This document shows positions 54,823 to 64,000 of a stretch of 64,000 nt of DNA, one piece after another. The notes below the pieces were generated by a model, which saw only the letters and a program-made list of their open reading frames with translations, made no database searches and was not told the origin of the DNA. The position numbers and the translations under genes are program-made. The DNA is from Auanema rhodensis. Lineage: Eukaryota > Animalia > Nematoda. The stretch spans positions 8,494,001 through 8,558,000 of the forward strand of contig OZ059894.1 in the NCBI GenBank assembly GCA_964057225.1. Reading direction: 5' to 3'. Positions within the stretch are counted from its first letter, which is position 1. Each line of letters starts with the position of its first letter.

Positions 54823-56986
54823 ATGAATATAGTTCATCCAGAATCATTACAACATATAAGTAACACTAGTCAAAAAAAGTGAACTAGAGTGTTGCAATTT
54901 TTATTTAAAAAAAATTTTATTATAGATATACTGTATACAAAACTCGTTGGGTTATTCTAGCTGTCTGTTTTATCGTTACATTAACTAACACAACTGTTTG
55001 GATATTTTCTAGATTCATAAGAAATATTGTTTTTTTTTCCAGATGTGGCTTGGCCTATCAGCTGTTAGTACTCAAGCTGATTTATATTACTGTGGAGTTA
55101 AATCTAAATGTGAAGTTGCGTTTATGGCAAATCAGATTTTCCAGGTTAGTTATAAACCCCAAGTGAGAGCAATACAAGTTTCATAGCTTAGAGTATTTTC
55201 TTATAAAAAATAATTAAAACAATGTATTATTTATTATGTCTATATGTATTCTATTGACTACTTTTGTAGCTTCTGGCAATCGTGTTTGGATTACCTGGAA
55301 TGTTTCTGACAGATAAGTTTGGAATTCGACCATCGGTATGTATATTTACTTCAAATCTATCAATAAATAATTTTAATTTAAGCTTTATGCGGCCGTTTTG
55401 TTTAACTTAGTAGGATCTTGTATTAGAACTCTATCATCATCACCACATATAGATGACAAATCTGTAAAACAATCACTTCTATATGGAGGTAAAAATAATA
55501 TTTTTCTTATATTTTTTCATGATGATCTTTACAGGAACAGCTATAGTAGCCACTGCTCAATCGTTTTTCCTGGTTTTACCTACAAAAATAGCTGAAGGAT
55601 GGTTTTGTGACAAACAACGTTCCATCGCAAACGTGATACTCTTTATTGGTATATTTTTATAATTTTATAAGTTAACACTTATAACAAGGATTGTTACAGC
55701 TCATCCAATTGGTGCAGCTTTGGGTATGATCTTGCCAGTTATGTATTTTGACACATCCAAAAAAATGTTAGCAAATAAAGGAAAAATCAAAAATAACAAT
55801 GACTTTTTTACATTTGTGAGTTCTATTAATTTAATATGTTGAAGGAAACTGTTTTTTTTTCAGAATCTGGGTTTGAGTATAGTTGCTTCAATTGCTTTGA
55901 TTCTTATACTTTTTGTTTCGACTAATCTGCCAAAAACACCACCAAGTAGTGCAGCTGAAGCAAGAGGAAAACATTCAATGTCTTTTTCAAAATCAATTGC
56001 AAAATGCTTAAAGTAGTCTAATAATTAAAACATTTCGAGTTTACCCAAATATATTTAAGGAATATCGAGTTCATCAAGCTTCTGCTCGTCGGTGGCACAA
56101 TTTATGGCTTACTTTGGACATTTGTTCTGCTTTTTCCAACAATCATGGTAAAAGGAAAAATTCTATCACCTGGGTATAGATTCATGAATGTTAATATTAA
56201 TATTTTTTATGTATAGTTTAATCTCTGCTATTTTCTTACTTGTGGGCACATTCTCCTCTCTGTTCATGGGTGATCTTGTGGATAGGACAAAAAAATTTCT
56301 CGGAATATTGCAAATGTTATTATTGGCAGGACTCATAAGCTTGATTGTAATAAGACTGGTACAATTGATTTTTTTTGCACATTTTTCTAATTATATCATA
56401 TTTGAGCTTTTGATATATATGAAATGGAATCGAATCTATGATGATGTTATCATTACAGTCTTAGTTTGCGTATATAGTTGTTGTGCTCTCCCACAAATCC
56501 CTGTTACTTTTGAATTAGCAGTTGAAATAACGTTTCCAGTATATGAAGCAACAGCAACCGGAATTTTGGTCATAGCAGGGTAACCGTCTCAAAATTTATT
56601 AAACACAATTATATTTGAATATAATTGAATGAATAAACAAATTTATTTTTATAGGAACATAATTCTACTTTGTCTCTATGCAGTGGTTGAGATGTTGCAG
56701 CGGACTAAGTTAATTTATAAACAAACTAAAAGGAATCCGGATAATTGGCAATGTACAAAACTTTGAAGTAAAATGAAATATTTTTTCTTTTTAGTAGCTC
56801 TTGATTTTCTTATTGTGCTGAGCTTTCTTCCCAATATTATGGCATACTTTTTTATGAAGCCAAAGTACGTTAACTGAAAATATTATTTTTATAATATAAC
56901 CTATATCTTCCAGGTATCAAAGAATGAATGCTGAACAAGAACAAGAAAACCGTTTATTTGATAAAGTTACTCAGGAAAAATACTGA
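54823..56986 (+). CDS. MFS transporter, SLC49 family (FLVCR/MFSD7/DIRC2-like), paralogue 2; multi-exon
   Basis: ATG 54823. Contains YTVYKTRWVIL, ANQIFQ, LPTKIAEGWFCDKQRSIAN, HPIG, PKTPPS, IPVTFELAVEITFPVYEATATG, and YQRMNAE. Stop TGA at 56984-56986. Many intron positions match paralogue 1. Confidence 0.88.
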
Positions 56987-57560
56987 TTCACATGAGCGAA
57001 TTGAAAATTTTTATAACTTTCGAAGTGCCTATCATCAAGCCAATTAGTGTAATAAATAGGAAGAGAAAATTTTTTATTTGAACCTTGGAAGATTGTTTTA
57101 TAACACTAAAATCATTCGTAATATCAACACACCAAAGTATTAATAAACACTTGCTTTAATGAGACTTTATCTATTAGGTGGTTGCATTCATTCAAGACCC
57201 CCTTTATAGAAATCAATTTTTCATGCAAATTTTACAGAATTTTTATAAAATAAATTTGAAATTAGAAAAAAATGTATTTAAATATATAATGAAAATCAAA
57301 TCATTACATTTCTAAAACTTTACATATGAAGAAAAATTTTTTTTCTTTGAACATTTTTTGTTTTCATTCTGGATATTGCTCTCATTCATCAATTCATGAA
57401 GGAATTTCTGCCAAAGAATCCTTCAGAACGATGAAACTTGTGTACAAAGATTCTTTTCCATCGTATTCAACATAAGAGAACCGCTTTGAATCTTGTGAGT
57501 TCGATCTCCAAGATCATGATAGATCTGAAGAGAAAACTTAACTTAACAAATCAAAAAATT

Positions 57561-57632
57561 GGGCCGAACCGGGAATTGAACCCGGGACCTCTCGCACCCG
57601 AAGCGAAAATCATACCCCTAGACCATTCGGCC
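57561..57632 (-). tRNA. tRNA-Pro(CGG) copy 1 (C27U, wobble-tolerated)
   Basis: GGCCGAATGGTCTAGGGGTATGATT(T)TCGCTTCGGGTGCGAGAGGTCCCGGGTTCAATTCCCGGTTCGGCCC cloverleaf, anticodon CGG. Confidence 0.9.
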
Positions 57633-57804
57633 ATGAAGTTTAGAAGTAATTTTCAAAAAATAGGAGAGTTTTCGTGAAATTGTTAATTTATAGTATATTC
57701 TTTAACTTGTTTAGTCATTTTTTCACAAAAAAGGACAAAGCGTGATGATTAGATTATGAATCAGAATCATTAATACTTCGAATTGAGTTAACAAATCAAA
57801 AATT

Positions 57805-57876
57805 GGGCCGAGCCGGGAATTGAACCCGGGACCTCTCGCACCCGAAGCGAGAATCATACCCCTAGACCATTCGGCC
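57805..57876 (-). tRNA. tRNA-Pro(CGG) copy 2 (U66C, A7:C66 mismatch)
   Basis: One substitution from the array consensus. Confidence 0.85.
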
Positions 57877-58048
57877 ATGAAGTTTAGAAGTAATTTTCAA
57901 AAAATAGGAGAGTTTTCGTGAAATTGTTAATTTATAGTATATTCTTTAACTTGTTTAGTCATTTTTTCACAAAAAAGGACAAAGCGTGATGATTAGATAA
58001 TGAATCAGAATCATTAATACTTCGATTTGAGTTAACAAATCAAAAATT

Positions 58049-58120
58049 GGTCCGAACCGGGAATTGAACCCGGGACCTCTCGCACCCGAAGCGAGAATCA
58101 TACCCCTAGACCATTCGGCC
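58049..58120 (-). tRNA. tRNA-Pro(CGG) copy 3 (C71A acceptor-stem mismatch)
   Basis: One substitution from the array consensus. Confidence 0.8.
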
Positions 58121-58293
58121 ATGAAGTTTGAAAGTTATTTTCAAAAAATAGGAGAGTTTTTGTTGAATTGTTAATTTATAATTTATTCTTGAACTTGTTT
58201 AGTCATTTTTTTACAAAAAAGGACAAAGCGTGATGATTAGATAATGAATCAGAATCATTAATACTTCGATTTGAGTTATCAAATCAAAAAATT

Positions 58294-58365
58294 GGGCCGA
58301 ACCGGGAATTGAACCCGGGACCTCTCGCACCCGAAGCGAGAATCATACCCCTAGACCATTCGGCC
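58294..58365 (-). tRNA. tRNA-Pro(CGG) copy 4
   Basis: Array consensus, intact A/B boxes. Confidence 0.95.
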
Positions 58366-58537
58366 ATGAAGTTTGAAAGTTATTTTCAAAAAATAGTAGA
58401 GTTTTTGTTAAATTGTTAATTTACAGTATATTCTTTAACTTGTTTAGTCATTTTTTTACAAAAAAGGACAAAGCGTGATGATTAGATAATGAATCAGAAT
58501 CATTAATACTTCGATTTGAGTTAACACATCAAAAATT

Positions 58538-58609
58538 GGGCCGAACCGGGAATTGAACCCGGGACCTCTCGCACCCGAAGCGAGATTCATACCCCTAGAC
58601 CATTCGGCC
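58538..58609 (-). tRNA. tRNA-Pro(CGG) copy 5 (U25A, D-stem)
   Basis: One substitution from the array consensus. Confidence 0.85.
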
Positions 58610-58782
58610 ATGAAGTTTGAAAGTTATTTTCAAAAAATAGTAGAGTTTTTGTTAAATTGTTAATTTATAATATATTCTTTAACTTGTTTAGTCATTTTTT
58701 TACAAAAAAGGACAAAGCGTGATGATTAGATAATGAATCAGAATCATTAATACTTCGATTTGAGTTATCAAATCAAAAAATT

Positions 58783-58854
58783 GGGCCGAACCGGGAATTG
58801 AACCCGGGACCTCTCGCACCCGAAGCGAGAATCATACCCCTAGACCATTCGGCC
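58783..58854 (-). tRNA. tRNA-Pro(CGG) copy 6
   Basis: Array consensus. Confidence 0.95.
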
Positions 58855-59028
58855 ATGAAGTTTGAAAGTTATTTTCAAAAAATAGGAGAGTTTTTGTTAA
58901 ATTGTTAATTTATAATATATTCTTTAACTTGTTTAGTCATTTTTTTTACAAAAAAGGACAAAGCGTGATGATTAGATTATGAATCAGAATCATTAATACT
59001 TCGAATTGAGTTAACAAATCAAAAAATT

Positions 59029-59100
59029 GGGCCGAACCGGGAATTGAACCCGGGACCTCTCGCACCCGAAGCGAGAATCATACCCCTAGACCATTCGGCC
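59029..59100 (-). tRNA. tRNA-Pro(CGG) copy 7
   Basis: Array consensus. Confidence 0.95.
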
Positions 59101-59273
59101 ATGAAGTTTGAAAGTTATTTTCAAAAAATAGTAGAGTTTTTGTTAAATTGTTAATTTATAGTATATTCTTTAACTTGTTTAGTCATTTTTTTACAAAAAA
59201 GGACAAAGCGTGATGATTAGATTATGAATCAGAATCATTAATACTTCGAATTGAGTTAACAAATCAAAAAATT

Positions 59274-59345
59274 GGGCCGAACCGGGAATTGAACCCGGGA
59301 CCTCTCGCACCCGAAGCGAGAATCATACCCCTAGACCATTCGGCC
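59274..59345 (-). tRNA. tRNA-Pro(CGG) copy 8
   Basis: Array consensus. Confidence 0.95.
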
Positions 59346-59518
59346 ATGAAGTTTGAAAGTTATTTTCAAAAAATAGTAGAGTTTTTGTTAAATTGTTAAT
59401 TTATAGTATATTCTTTAACTTGTTTAGTCATTTTTTTACAAAAAAGGACAAAGCGTGATGATTAGATTATGAATCAGAATCATTAATACTTCGAATTGAG
59501 TTAACAAATCAAAAAATT

Positions 59519-59590
59519 GGGCCGAACCGGGAATTGAACCCGGGACCTCTCGCACCCGAAGCGAGAATCATACCCCTAGACCATTCGGCC
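59519..59590 (-). tRNA. tRNA-Pro(CGG) copy 9
   Basis: Array consensus. Confidence 0.95.
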
Positions 59591-59763
59591 ATGAAGTTTG
59601 AAAGTTATTTTCAAAAAATAGTAGAGTTTTTGTTAAATTGTTAATTTATAGTATATTCTTTAACTTGTTTAGTCATTTTTTTATAAAAAAGGACAAAGCT
59701 TGATGATTAGATTATGAATCAGAATCATTAATACTTCGATTTGAGTTAACAAATCAAAAAATT

Positions 59764-59835
59764 GGGCCGAACCGGGAATTGAACCCGGGACCTCTCGCAC
59801 CCGAAGCGAGAATCATACCCCTAGACCATTCGGCC
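59764..59835 (-). tRNA. tRNA-Pro(CGG) copy 10
   Basis: Array consensus. Confidence 0.95.
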
Positions 59836-60008
59836 ATGAAGTTTGAAAGTTATTTTCAAAAAATAGGAGAGTTTTTGTTAAATTATGAGAATATAATATA
59901 TTCTTTAACTTGTTTAGTCATTTTTTTATAAAAAAGGACAAAGCTTGATGATTAGATTATGAATCAGAATCATTAATACTTCGATTTGAGTTAACAAATC
60001 AAAAAATT

Positions 60009-60080
60009 GGGCCGAACCGGGAATTGAACCCGGGACCTCTCGCACCCGAAGCGAGAATCATACCCCTAGACCATTCGGCC
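60009..60080 (-). tRNA. tRNA-Pro(CGG) copy 11
   Basis: Array consensus. Confidence 0.95.
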
Positions 60081-60253
60081 ATGAAGTTTGAAAGTTATTT
60101 TCAAAAAATAGGAGAGTTTTTGTTAAATTATGAGAATATAATATATTCTTTAACTTGTTTAGTCATTTTTTTACAAGACAGGACAAAGCGTGATGATTTG
60201 ATAATGAATCAGAATCATTAATACTTCGATTTCAGTTAACAAATCAAAAAATT

Positions 60254-60325
60254 GGGCCGAACCGGGAATTGAACCCGGGACCTCTCGCACCCGAAGCGAG
60301 AATCATACCCCTAGACCATTTGGCC
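60254..60325 (-). tRNA. tRNA-Pro(CGG) copy 12 (G5A, acceptor-stem mismatch)
   Basis: One substitution from the array consensus. Confidence 0.85.
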
Positions 60326-60498
60326 ATGAAGTTTGAAAGTTATTTTCAAAAAATAGGAGAGTTTTTGTTAAATTATGAGAATATAATATATTCTTCAACT
60401 TGTTTAGTCATTTTTAAACATGATAAGACAAAGCTTGATGATTAGATTATGAATCAGAATCATTAATACTTCGATTTGAGTTAACAAATCAAAAAATT

Positions 60499-60570
60499 GG
60501 GCCGAACCGGGAATTGAACCCGGGACCTCTCGCACCCGAAGCGAGAATCATACCCCTAGACCATTCGGCC
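60499..60570 (-). tRNA. tRNA-Pro(CGG) copy 13
   Basis: Array consensus. Confidence 0.95.
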
Positions 60571-60743
60571 ATGAAGTTTGAAAGTTATTTTCAAAAAATA
60601 GGAGAGTTTTTGTTAAATTGTTAATTTATAATATATTCTTTAACTTGTTTAGTCATTTTTTTACAAGACAGGACAAAGCGTGATGATTTGATAATGAATC
60701 AGAATCATTAATACTTCGATTTTAGTTAACAAATCAAAAAATA

Positions 60744-60815
60744 GGGCCGAACCGGAAATTGAACCCGGGACATCTTGCACCCGAAGCGAGAATCATACCC
60801 CTAGACCATTCGGCC
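60744..60815 (-). tRNA. tRNA-Pro(CGG) copy 14, variant B (G41A, G45U, C61U); possible pseudogene
   Basis: Anticodon-stem C29:A41 mismatch and loss of invariant C61 in the B box. Confidence 0.7.
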
Positions 60816-60988
60816 ATGAAGTTTGAAAGTTATTTTCAAAAAATAGGAGAGTTTTTGTTAAATTGTTAATTTATAATATATTCTTTAACTTGTTTAGTCA
60901 TTTTTTTATAAAAAAGGACAAAGCGTGATGATTTGATAATGAATCAGAATCATTAATACTTCGATTTCAGTTAACAAATCAAAAAATA

Positions 60989-61060
60989 GGGCCGAACCGG
61001 AAATTGAACCCGGGACATCTTGCACCCGAAGCGAGAATCATACCCCTAGACCATTCGGCC
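60989..61060 (-). tRNA. tRNA-Pro(CGG) copy 15, variant B; possible pseudogene
   Basis: Same three substitutions as copy 14. Confidence 0.7.
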
Positions 61061-61233
61061 ATGAAGTTTGAAAGTTATTTTCAAAAAATAGGAGAGTTTT
61101 TGTTAAATTATGAGAATATAATATATTCTTTAACTTGTTTAGTCATTTTTAAACATGATAAGACAAAGCTTGATGATTAGATTATGAATCAGAATTATTA
61201 ATACTTCGAATTGAGTTAACAAATCAAAAAATT

Positions 61234-61305
61234 GGGCCGAACCGGGAATTGAACCTGGGAGCTCTCGCACCCGAAGCGAGAATCATACCCCTAGACCATT
61301 CGGCC
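61234..61305 (-). tRNA. tRNA-Pro(CGG) copy 16 (G46C, G51A)
   Basis: Two substitutions, including a T-stem A51:C63 mismatch. Confidence 0.75.
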
Positions 61306-61478
61306 ATAAAGTTTAGAAGTAATTTTCAAAAAATAGGAGAGTTTTTGTTAAATTGTTAATTTATAATATATTCTTTAACTTGTTTAGTCATTTTTAAACA
61401 TGATAAGACAAAGCTTGATGATTAGATTATGAATCAGAATCATTAATACTTCGATTTGAGTTAACAAATCAAAAAATT

Positions 61479-61550
61479 GGGCCGAACCGGGAATTGAACC
61501 CGGGACCTCTCGCACCCGAAGCGAGAATCATACCCCTAGACCATTCGGCC
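61479..61550 (-). tRNA. tRNA-Pro(CGG) copy 17
   Basis: Array consensus. Confidence 0.95.
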
Positions 61551-61723
61551 ATGAAGTTTGAAAGTTATTTTCAAAAAATAGGAGAGTTTTTGTTAAATTG
61601 TTAATTTATAATATATTCTTTAACTTGTTTAGTCATTTTTTTATAAAAAAGGACAAAGCGTGATGATTTGATAATGAATCAGAATCATTAATACTTCGAT
61701 TTCAGTTAACAAATCAAAAAATA

Positions 61724-61795
61724 GGGCCGAACCGGAAATTGAACCCGGGACATCTTGCACCCGAAGCGAGAATCATACCCCTAGACCATTCGGCC
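61724..61795 (-). tRNA. tRNA-Pro(CGG) copy 18, variant B; possible pseudogene
   Basis: Same three substitutions as copy 14. Confidence 0.7.
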
Positions 61796-61968
61796 ATGAA
61801 GTTTGAAAGTTATTTTCAAAAAATAGGAGAGTTTTTGTTAAATTATGAGAATATAATATATTCTTTAACTTGTTTAGTCATTTTTAAACATGATAAGACA
61901 AAGCTTGATGATTAGATTATGAATCAGAATCATTAATACTTCGATTTGAGTTAACAAATCAAAAAATT

Positions 61969-62040
61969 GGGCCGAACCGGGAATTGAACCCGGGACCTCT
62001 CGCACCCGAAGCGAGAATCATACCCCTAGACCATTCGGCC
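61969..62040 (-). tRNA. tRNA-Pro(CGG) copy 19
   Basis: Array consensus. Confidence 0.95.
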
Positions 62041-62213
62041 ATAAAGTTTAGAAATAATTTTCAAAAAATAGGAGAGTTTTTGTTAAATTGTTAATTTATA
62101 ATATATTCTTTAACTTGTTTAGTCATTTTTTTATAAAAAAGGACAAAGCTTGATGATTAGATTATGAATCAGAATCATTAATACTTCGATTTGAGTTAAC
62201 AAATCAAAAAATT

Positions 62214-62285
62214 GGGCCGAACCGGGAATTGAACCCGGGACCTCTCGCACCCGAAGCGAGAATCATACCCCTAGACCATTCGGCC
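62214..62285 (-). tRNA. tRNA-Pro(CGG) copy 20
   Basis: Array consensus. Confidence 0.95.
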
Positions 62286-62458
62286 ATGAAGTTTGAAAGT
62301 TATTTTCAAAAAATAGGAGAGTTTTTGTTAAATTATGAGAATATAATATATTCTTCAACTTGTTTAGTCATTTTTAAACATGATAAGACAAAGCTTGATG
62401 ATTAGATTATGAATCAGAATTATTAATACTTCGAATTGAGTTAACAAATCAAAAAATT

Positions 62459-62530
62459 GGGCCGAACCGGGAATTGAACCCGGGACCTCTCGCACCCGAA
62501 GCGAGAATCATACCCCTAGACCATTCGGCC
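62459..62530 (-). tRNA. tRNA-Pro(CGG) copy 21
   Basis: Array consensus. Confidence 0.95.
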
Positions 62531-62703
62531 ATGAAGTTTGAAAGTTATTTTCAAAAAATAGGAGAGTTTTTGTTAAATTATGAGAATATAATATATTCTT
62601 CAACTTGTTTAGTCATTTTTAAACATGATAAGACAAAGCTTGATGATTAGATTATGAATCAGAATCATTAATACTTCGATTTGAGTTAACAAATCAAAAA
62701 ATT

Positions 62704-62775
62704 GGGCCGAACCGGGAATTGAACCCGGGACCTCTCGCACCCGAAGCGAGAATCATACCCCTAGACCATTCGGCC
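62704..62775 (-). tRNA. tRNA-Pro(CGG) copy 22
   Basis: Array consensus. Confidence 0.95.
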
Positions 62776-62948
62776 ATGAAGTTTGAAAGTTATTTTCAAA
62801 AAATAGGAGAGTTTTTGTTAAATTATGAGAATATAATATATTCTTTAACTTGTTTAGTCATTTTTTTATAAAAAAGGACAAAGCTTGATGATTAGATTAT
62901 GAATCAGAATCATTAATACTTCGATTTGAGTTAACAAATCAAAAAATT

Positions 62949-63020
62949 GGGCCGAACCGGGAATTGAACCCGGGACCTCTCGCACCCGAAGCGAGAATCA
63001 TACCCCTAGACCATTCGGCC
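62949..63020 (-). tRNA. tRNA-Pro(CGG) copy 23
   Basis: Array consensus. Confidence 0.95.
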
Positions 63021-63193
63021 ATGAAGTTTGAAAGTTATTTTCAAAAAATAGGAGAGTTTTTGTTAAATTATGAGAATATAATATATTCTTTAACTTGTTT
63101 AGTCATTTTTTTATAAAAAAGGACAAAGCTTGATGATTAGATTATGAATCAGAATCATTAATACTTCGAATTGAGTTAACAAATCAAAATATT

Positions 63194-63265
63194 GGGCCGA
63201 ACCGGGAATTGAACCCGGGACCTCTCGCACCCGAAGCGAGAATCATACCCCTAGACCATTCGGCC
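63194..63265 (-). tRNA. tRNA-Pro(CGG) copy 24 (terminator shortened to T4)
   Basis: Consensus tRNA body; flank reads AAAATATT on +. Confidence 0.93.
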
Positions 63266-63438
63266 ATAAAGTTTAGAAATAATTTTCAAAAAATAGGAGA
63301 GTTTTTGTTAAATTGTTAATTTATAATATATTCTTTAACTTGTTTAGTCATTTTTTTATAAAAAAGGACAAAGCTTGATGATTAGATTATGAATCAGAAT
63401 CATTAATACTTCGATTTGAGTTAACAAATCAAAAAATT

Positions 63439-63510
63439 GGGCCGAACCGGGAATTGAACCCGGGACCTCTCGCACCCGAAGCGAGAATCATACCCCTAGA
63501 CCATTCGGCC
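63439..63510 (-). tRNA. tRNA-Pro(CGG) copy 25
   Basis: Array consensus. Confidence 0.95.
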
Positions 63511-63683
63511 ATGAAGTTTGAAAGTTATTTTCAAAAAATAGGAGAGTTTTTGTTAAATTGTTAATTAATAATATATTCTTTAACTTGTTTAGTCATTTTT
63601 TTACAAGACAGGACAAAGCGTGATGATTTGATAATGAATCAGAATCATTAATACTTCGATTTCAGTTAACAAATCAAAAAATA

Positions 63684-63755
63684 GGGCCGAACCGGAAATT
63701 GAACCCGGGACATCTTGCACCCGAAGCGAGAATCATACCCCTAGACCATTCGGCC
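63684..63755 (-). tRNA. tRNA-Pro(CGG) copy 26, variant B; possible pseudogene
   Basis: Same three substitutions as copy 14. Confidence 0.7.
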
Positions 63756-63928
63756 ATGAAGTTCGAAAGTTATTTTCGAAAAATAGGAGAGTTTTTGTTA
63801 AATTGTTAATTTATAATATATTCTTTAACTTGTTTAGTCATTTTTTTACAAGACAGGACAAAGCGTGATGATTTGATAATGAATCAGAATCATTAATACT
63901 TCGATTTCAGTTAACAAATCAAAAAATA

Positions 63929-64000
63929 GGGCCGAACCGGAAATTGAACCCGGGACATCTTGCACACGAAGCGAGAATCATACCCCTAGACCATTCGGCC
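63929..64000 (-). tRNA. tRNA-Pro-derived copy 27, variant B with anticodon CGT (Thr); possible pseudogene
   Basis: Anticodon arm on - reads CTCGC-TT-CGT-GT-GCAAG. The change is at + position 63966. Confidence 0.65.

Follow-up and report, generated by a model that had tools for sequence, protein, structure and literature searches.

Why should a nematode chromosome carry, at one place, some 140 genes for a proline transfer RNA (tRNA) that reads a rare codon? The question is raised by a 64,000-nt stretch of the Auanema rhodense genome (A. rhodensis in GenBank assembly GCA_964057225.1), C1:8,494,001-8,558,000, where C1 stands for contig OZ059894.1; this stretch is referred to below as the window, and its right-hand end is occupied by a tandem array of tRNA-Pro(CGG) genes. 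The 164 kb around the window were also read, and a genome of 180,911,798 bp was searched. An earlier interpretation of the letters of the window (the sequence-only reading) had described the array as the amplification of a rare-codon isoacceptor, possibly with a role in chromosome structure. The interpretation favoured here, with a probability of roughly 0.6, is that the array is a working tRNA gene family, inflated by recombination, held by selection and probably retained in body cells, its transcription, somatic retention and selective maintenance being what we infer from the evidence below. An excess of tRNA genes in this species is already published, with 19,554 annotated in a germline assembly of 180.9 Mb (bioRxiv 10.64898/2026.08.27.747507); new here are the census of the proline (Pro) family, its comparison with codon usage, and the comparison of variation in the gene body with that in the spacer.

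The array and its repeat unit

The features of the window on which the argument depends are the following, with RNA polymerase III abbreviated to Pol III.

57543..64000, minus strand: part of the tRNA-Pro(CGG) array that falls in the window, with 27 genes and a 245-bp unit (ARAGORN, Tandem Repeats Finder, Rfam)
59029..59100, minus strand: tRNA-Pro(CGG) gene with the master sequence, 72 nt, clean cloverleaf, A-box-like and B-box-like sequences, 55.6 bits
59021..59026, minus strand: predicted oligo-T (T6) Pol III terminator, 2 nt past the 3' end of the 59029-59100 gene
58855..59028, minus strand: AT-rich spacer of one unit, about 173 nt
63929..64000, minus strand: degenerate copy, anticodon CGT, classed as tRNA-Thr by ARAGORN, 43.5 bits

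All 27 tRNA genes called by ARAGORN lie on the minus strand between 57561 and 64000, with the anticodon CGG in 26 and CGT in the last, and Tandem Repeats Finder reports a single array over 57543-64000 with a period of 245, 26.4 copies and 95% matches. The satellite-like, head-to-tail 245-bp arrangement proposed by the sequence-only reading is thereby confirmed, and its count of 16 identical bodies among the 27 is reproduced exactly by sequence comparison. Every window copy exceeds the Rfam RF00005 cut-off of 29 bits (range 43.1-55.6); 17 are structurally clean, and in the other 10 a stem pair is broken or the anticodon altered. On the gene strand, a unit consists of the 72-nt body, two bases, the T6 run and about 165 nt of AT-rich spacer, so that it holds one tRNA gene and is free of short tandem repeats. 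The master body, found in those 16 window copies and in 87 of the 140 copies of the whole locus, has one non-standard pair (U13-U22 type) and no further mismatch. Its A-box-like and B-box-like sequences, read directly, stand at the usual positions, and a run of at least four T occurs within 15 nt downstream of 140 of 140 copies, which bears out the boxes and terminators described earlier. Together with the scores and an anticodon CGG in 138 of 140 copies, these are the marks of a nuclear tRNA gene (RF00005, predicted Pol III type 2). They are not those of a tRNA-derived short interspersed nuclear element or of a dead tRNA-headed satellite: the bodies are full-length and mostly intact, the terminators follow immediately, and the copies are gathered at one locus.

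The array does reach the end of the window, as had been noted, but this end is only an edge of the sequence examined. The window part forms the left end of a minus-strand block of 41 genes, whose right end is at C1:8,561,540. Past the window, 3.5 kb more of the array keep this orientation and another 64 kb are inverted, a 2.9-kb insert being followed by seven blocks of opposite orientation that extend to C1:8,627,750. The whole locus comprises about 144 units with 140 called genes (138 CGG and 2 CGT) in eight blocks over 76.6 kb, made up of approximately 35.3 kb of array and 41 kb of inserted DNA, most of it long terminal repeat (LTR) retroelements. The length of the array and what lies past it, which the sequence-only reading had asked to have settled, are thus known: two Pro(TGG) genes follow its right end, and the right flank is unique, gene-bearing DNA with AAA ATPase exons, not a telomere.

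Proline isoacceptors and codon usage

Is this amplification peculiar to the isoacceptor that reads CCG? A genome-wide search for the exact 29-nt Pro anticodon arm, with the wobble base left free, returned 716 matches, of which 119 have C at the wobble position, 251 have A and about 346 have T (the last by subtraction). TGG, AGG and CGG therefore account for 48%, 35% and 17% of the Pro genes, and the claim of an amplification specific to a rare-codon isoacceptor does not survive, the CGG family being the smallest and least amplified of the three. The other single-isoacceptor arrays that the sequence-only reading had proposed to look for exist on the same chromosome, each family being arrayed separately, with Pro(TGG) at C1:7,417,910-7,547,000 and Pro(AGG) from C1:17,201,850 onward (both confirmed with ARAGORN on samples). 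Since the bodies of the three arrays are near-identical and their spacers unrelated, the arrays were amplified separately; with spacers so unrelated, no upstream promoter motif common to the three was found. Spacings are quantised in the other two arrays, at about 253, 373, 495 and 617 bp in Pro(TGG) and at 247 and 367-371 bp in Pro(AGG), as if the gene had been lost from some units.

The exact CGG arms are almost entirely confined to the locus (118 of 119 genome-wide), as are the 11-nt CGG anticodon loops (130 of 133, in a search whose reversed-pattern control gave 1-14 matches per strand), and neither pattern revealed a dispersed housekeeping set of Pro(CGG) genes anywhere in the genome. The array is, in other words, essentially the whole Pro(CGG) gene family itself and not an addition to it.

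The codon that this family reads is indeed rare, as had been suspected by eye. Five actin genes use CCA 60 times, CCT 24, CCC 14 and CCG not once among 98 Pro codons, and 108 open frames of at least 90 codons in unique DNA give 36% CCA, 33% CCT, 16% CCC and 14% CCG. Set against the isoacceptors, codon shares of 36% (CCA), 49% (CCT plus CCC) and 14% (CCG) compare with about 346 TGG, 251 AGG and 119 CGG genes, so that the sizes of the Pro arrays roughly follow codon use. The sequence-only reading had allowed that its proposal would fall if all isoacceptors were arrayed in proportion to demand; such a proportion holds approximately within the Pro family, to which the comparison of genes with codons is confined and in which CGG makes up 17% of genes against 14% CCG among codons. 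What is abnormal is the absolute scale, and this applies to the entire tRNA complement. A first look across the genome gave about 28,000 tRNA candidates, and the top Rfam tRNA matches fall in a very large array at C4:18,565,922-18,621,015 with a period of approximately 377 bp.

Position relative to programmed DNA elimination

Programmed elimination removes approximately 61% of the genome from the body cells of A. rhodense. The breaks fall at 28 internal sites, every one of which bears a 29-base palindrome, such that each autosome has three discarded repeat blocks and two retained gene-rich arms; long-read coverage is about 29x in eliminated and about 236x in retained DNA (bioRxiv 10.64898/2026.08.27.747507). 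Whether the array belongs to the retained or to the discarded fraction was judged from its position. Reading the border between genes and satellite on C1 yielded the palindrome core TTAGGCT-N-AGCCTAA, and a copy of this core centred at C6:16,502,175 agrees to the base with the published break on chromosome 5 around 16,502,174, where telomere addition occurs just before the central base (bioRxiv 10.64898/2026.08.27.747507). The same site was not found on contig C5, and contig numbers must therefore differ from chromosome numbers. Another pattern, TAGGC-N15-GCCTA, was rejected when it proved unmatched at the C1:18.0 Mb boundary.

Core palindromes occur on C1 at 5,565,623, 10,908,630 and 18,003,660; a fourth site, expected at 13.0-13.5 Mb, was not found with the core pattern at one mismatch. 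The sequence on either side corresponds: samples at 1.0, 3.0 and 5.0 Mb are wall-to-wall 351-bp satellite, which extends to 5.5625 Mb, fills the samples at 12.5 and 13.0 Mb as well and resumes at 18.0046 Mb, and all samples at 6.0-10.5 Mb and 13.5-17.0 Mb are unique sequence. Second copies of the palindrome lie further into the discarded side, at 5,566,283 (660 bp off) and 18,004,334 (674 bp off), and those at 18.0 Mb are mirror images within an inverted duplication. An actin gene at C1:5,564,169-5,565,454 ends approximately 170 bp before the 5,565,623 palindrome, on its satellite side, and is probably the single eliminated actin paralogue that has been reported (bioRxiv 10.64898/2026.08.27.747507).

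The array itself, at C1:8.55-8.63 Mb of a 24.7-Mb chromosome, is 3.0 and 2.3 Mb from the flanking palindromes. Because it is bounded by the palindromes at 5.566 and 10.909 Mb and its surroundings are not satellite, it is placed near the middle of the left retained arm, and the core-pattern search of C1 found no break-site palindrome in or beside it. It therefore does not lie at a chromosome end, nor, to judge by position, on the discarded side of a break as a germline-restricted repeat would. Given its distance from the break sites and the ordinary genes around it, the array is most likely kept in body cells, and as retained DNA it should serve both soma and germline. Two further features of the window mark its left flank.

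55398..56877, plus strand: membrane-protein gene, exon-like open frames with a weak MFS-like match (PF12832, E 0.0047, below cut-off)
57326..57542, plus strand: unique flank at the left edge of the array, with a weak match to the helix-turn-helix domain of Mos1 (mariner) transposase (PF17906, E 0.035, below cut-off)

The exon-like frames of the membrane-protein gene, 0.7-2 kb to the left, show that the array abuts ordinary genic DNA, and the weak Mos1 match raises the possibility that the flank between them is what is left of a decayed transposon, directly adjoining the first unit. No open reading frame of at least 200 aa was found in the window, as is expected of an intron-rich eukaryote.

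Variation, growth and competing explanations

An alignment of 130 complete units provides a comparison of the tRNA body with the spacer that accompanies it. Nucleotide diversity, 0.017 over the 72 nt of the body, rises to 0.092 in the spacer, which is thus 5.5 times more variable, and between the inverted halves of the locus the bodies are 98.0% and the spacers 88.4% identical. Singleton-only columns make up similar fractions of body (19%) and spacer (27%), a difference that is not significant, whereas columns with variants at a frequency of at least 5% are depleted in the body (5 of 72 versus 43 of 173; Fisher p = 0.001). This pattern argues that new mutations arise everywhere and rarely spread in the tRNA, and with 105 of the 140 locus copies having the anticodon CGG and no broken stem pair, selection would appear to keep most bodies intact while the spacers drift. 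One part of the spacer resembles the body: the 12-nt block AAAATGACTAAA (window 58938-58949, minus strand), which is found at the same place in every unit, approximately 80-90 bp upstream of each gene, has a diversity of 0.017 over the 130 units, the same as that of the tRNA, and does not occur in the spacers of the Pro(TGG) or Pro(AGG) arrays.

The two CGT copies differ in their state. That at 63929-64000 carries four substitutions relative to the master, namely the anticodon change and three others, with one broken stem pair, and is a probable pseudogene. The second, in the plus-strand block C1:8,564,508-8,567,269, differs from the master in its anticodon alone. These copies would misread ACG if they were transcribed and went on being charged with proline, although G36 is normally required for that charging.

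Several observations weigh against a family held by selection. A broken stem pair or a changed anticodon affects 35 of the 140 copies and some of the defective variants have spread to 9-12 copies, such that selection on the individual copy would have to be leaky, with 25% of copies defective. GC-biased gene conversion could also protect a GC-rich body. The codon sample is small (388 Pro codons from the long open frames, 98 from actin), and approximately 140 copies are far more than seem needed for a codon that the actin genes never use; the earlier remark that this copy number is hard to explain by translation is sustained.

These points lend most to the alternative that the array is a neutral or selfish satellite, a 245-bp unit spread by unequal crossing-over and slippage in which the tRNA gene is a passenger and only a few copies are needed. 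Its appeal lies in a copy number so far above the need for a rare codon, in damaged copies that have spread as subfamilies, and in inserted DNA, mostly retroelements, that occupies more than half of the locus span; repeats have, moreover, been argued to accumulate in this species under weak surveillance (bioRxiv 10.64898/2026.08.27.747507). A passenger, however, would not be expected to be so much less diverse than its spacer, with common variants depleted in the body alone, nor to keep its terminator in every copy, and the array lies in gene-rich, probably retained DNA outside the eliminated satellite blocks. It is also the only sizeable Pro(CGG) locus of the genome, and at least part of it must therefore work unless Pro(UGG) reads all CCG. 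Satellite spread is the chief rival account of the array, a live one, though on balance less probable than a working gene family.

Much less probable is the suggestion that the array is a chromosome-structural element, whether as a TFIIIC/condensin boundary, as a site of pairing or breakage, or as a mark of chromosome ends in germline or soma. Dense B boxes, of which there are 144 in 77 kb, would be expected to form strong TFIIIC sites, and tRNA arrays have been proposed to lie at chromosome ends in Entamoeba (PMC2652664). Against this, the A. rhodense array is internal, with genes on both sides and no break-site palindrome in or next to it, and the same layout recurs for other isoacceptors at other positions, so that no one landmark is singled out; the proposal of an end, boundary or breakage site fails on position.

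An over-expansion of a short tRNA cluster during assembly can be set aside as highly implausible, for although tandem repeats are prone to assembly errors and a 2019 short-read assembly had only about 500 tRNA loci, the units differ in length (242-252 bp) and by many distinguishing polymorphisms, distinct insertions interrupt the array, one of them with a clear target-site duplication, and the assembly is built from HiFi reads that are said to map uniquely in repeats (bioRxiv 10.64898/2026.08.27.747507).

For a selected gene family of this kind, each 245-bp unit would be a self-contained Pol III gene, comprising internal A and B boxes, the 72-nt body, the T6 terminator and an AT-rich spacer. 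The array would have grown by unequal exchange between units and by segmental duplication of many units at once, and would later have been split by an inversion and by inserted DNA, chiefly LTR retroelements, with selection on the tRNA preserving most bodies as the spacers drifted. It would represent one instance of a genome-wide inflation of tRNA genes in which the Pro arrays keep a rough codon ratio.

Traces that would fit both modes of growth are present. When the locus is compared with itself, units recur at offsets of 245 and 487 bp, and one segmental duplication stands out, C1:8,587,161-8,592,493 versus 8,600,243-8,605,570, in which 5,333 bp and 22 units are repeated at 99.5% identity; no other match in the locus is comparable. 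A complete LTR element, C1:8,592,492-8,600,246, lies exactly between the two copies; its 414-bp LTRs are 100% identical, its left junction falls inside a tRNA body, and both junctions share a few bases with the ends of the element. The combination of a 22-unit duplication, a young element at its junction, a break within a tRNA body and microhomology is consistent with retroelement cDNA having been taken up as filler in one and the same event; the arrangement resembles a tandem duplication that captured retroelement DNA more than it does an ordinary integration. A second candidate for a duplication flanking a retroelement, around a 9.7-kb element, was rejected, only 791 bp and a 3.18-kb insert being specifically duplicated and the rest being generic array similarity.

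The inserted DNA includes, in addition, a 9.7-kb element of Bel/Pao type, which has an envelope frame resembling phlebovirus G2 and a 5-bp target duplication, TATTA, at C1:8,571,857-8,571,861, some 57-62 bp upstream of a tRNA gene; a copy of the first LTR family, inverted, at the same spot in another unit, with a 10-bp duplication at C1:8,605,937-8,605,946; a stretch of Ty3-like frames for reverse transcriptase, RNase H and integrase; and two copies of a 3.18-kb sequence without recognised domains. Within the 245-bp unit, two unrelated LTR families thus occupy the same position, which precedes the next tRNA gene by about 57-66 bp, and a third junction is 4 bp from it. The shared position of two unrelated families upstream of a tRNA gene suggests that these elements target the Pol III complex, which would imply that the tRNA genes are occupied in the germline. 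The long open frames of the elements encode Bel/Pao protease and integrase and, with them, the fusion domain of phlebovirus glycoprotein G2 (E 2e-42 and 3e-64), and to judge from these matches the elements with G2 frames are retrovirus-like nematode elements with a captured envelope gene.

L012:5051-9991 (locus piece), minus strand: Bel/Pao and G2 long open frames
L016:1514-5056 (locus piece), plus strand: Bel/Pao and G2 long open frames

Comparison with other arrays and meaning for the genome

Head-to-tail units with an intact gene, more uniform than its spacer, place the locus with the tandem tRNA arrays of Entamoeba, zebrafish and Xenopus. The Xenopus clusters of oocyte-type 5S rRNA genes and tRNA genes are composed of Pol III genes with internal promoters, arranged head-to-tail with drifting AT-rich spacers and occasional pseudogenes, and they are tied to oocyte-specific expression. 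The Pro(CGG) array, which is known from its sequence, shares with them the amplified head-to-tail Pol III units and the drifting AT-rich spacers. Entamoeba keeps nearly all of its tRNA genes in tandem arrays that take up a large share of the genome and constitute the working tRNA set, a likeness that is limited by units holding up to five tRNA genes, and sometimes 5S RNA, with microsatellite-like repeats between them (PMC2652664). The arrays of Entamoeba proposed to lie at chromosome ends (PMC2652664) differ in this respect too from the Pro(CGG) array, with its one gene per unit and its internal position. Zebrafish shows a similarly extreme inflation, with more than 20,000 predicted tRNA genes in transposon-rich repetitive clusters, chiefly on chromosome 4, where the clustered genes supply maternally deposited tRNAs and isolated copies serve later stages (PMC11417395). 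With at most three candidate CGG loops outside the array, no such dual gene set is visible for Pro(CGG).

The closest comparison is with the arrays described in A. rhodense itself, which belong to the same genome and the same phenomenon: only 215 of the 19,554 annotated tRNA genes are pseudogenes, and tandem blocks of several tRNA loci are mentioned (bioRxiv 10.64898/2026.08.27.747507). That account places tRNA arrays only among the germline-restricted repeats and contains no per-isoacceptor analysis, whereas the Pro(CGG) array lies, by position, in retained DNA. A wider proposition would be that the tRNA arrays of the retained genome are dosage-balanced working families that scale together with codon use despite a tens-fold inflation, and that they have grown in part through breaks in tRNA genes repaired as multi-kilobase tandem duplications; as a generalisation this is speculative and, as it stands, doubtful.

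The value of the present analysis is partly corrective, as neither a special amplification of a rare-codon tRNA nor a role at chromosome ends is called for. For the biology of A. rhodense, it signifies that the tRNA gene excess extends beyond the junk-like DNA eliminated from body cells: all three Pro isoacceptor families are arrays in gene-rich, probably retained DNA, and their sizes roughly follow codon use.

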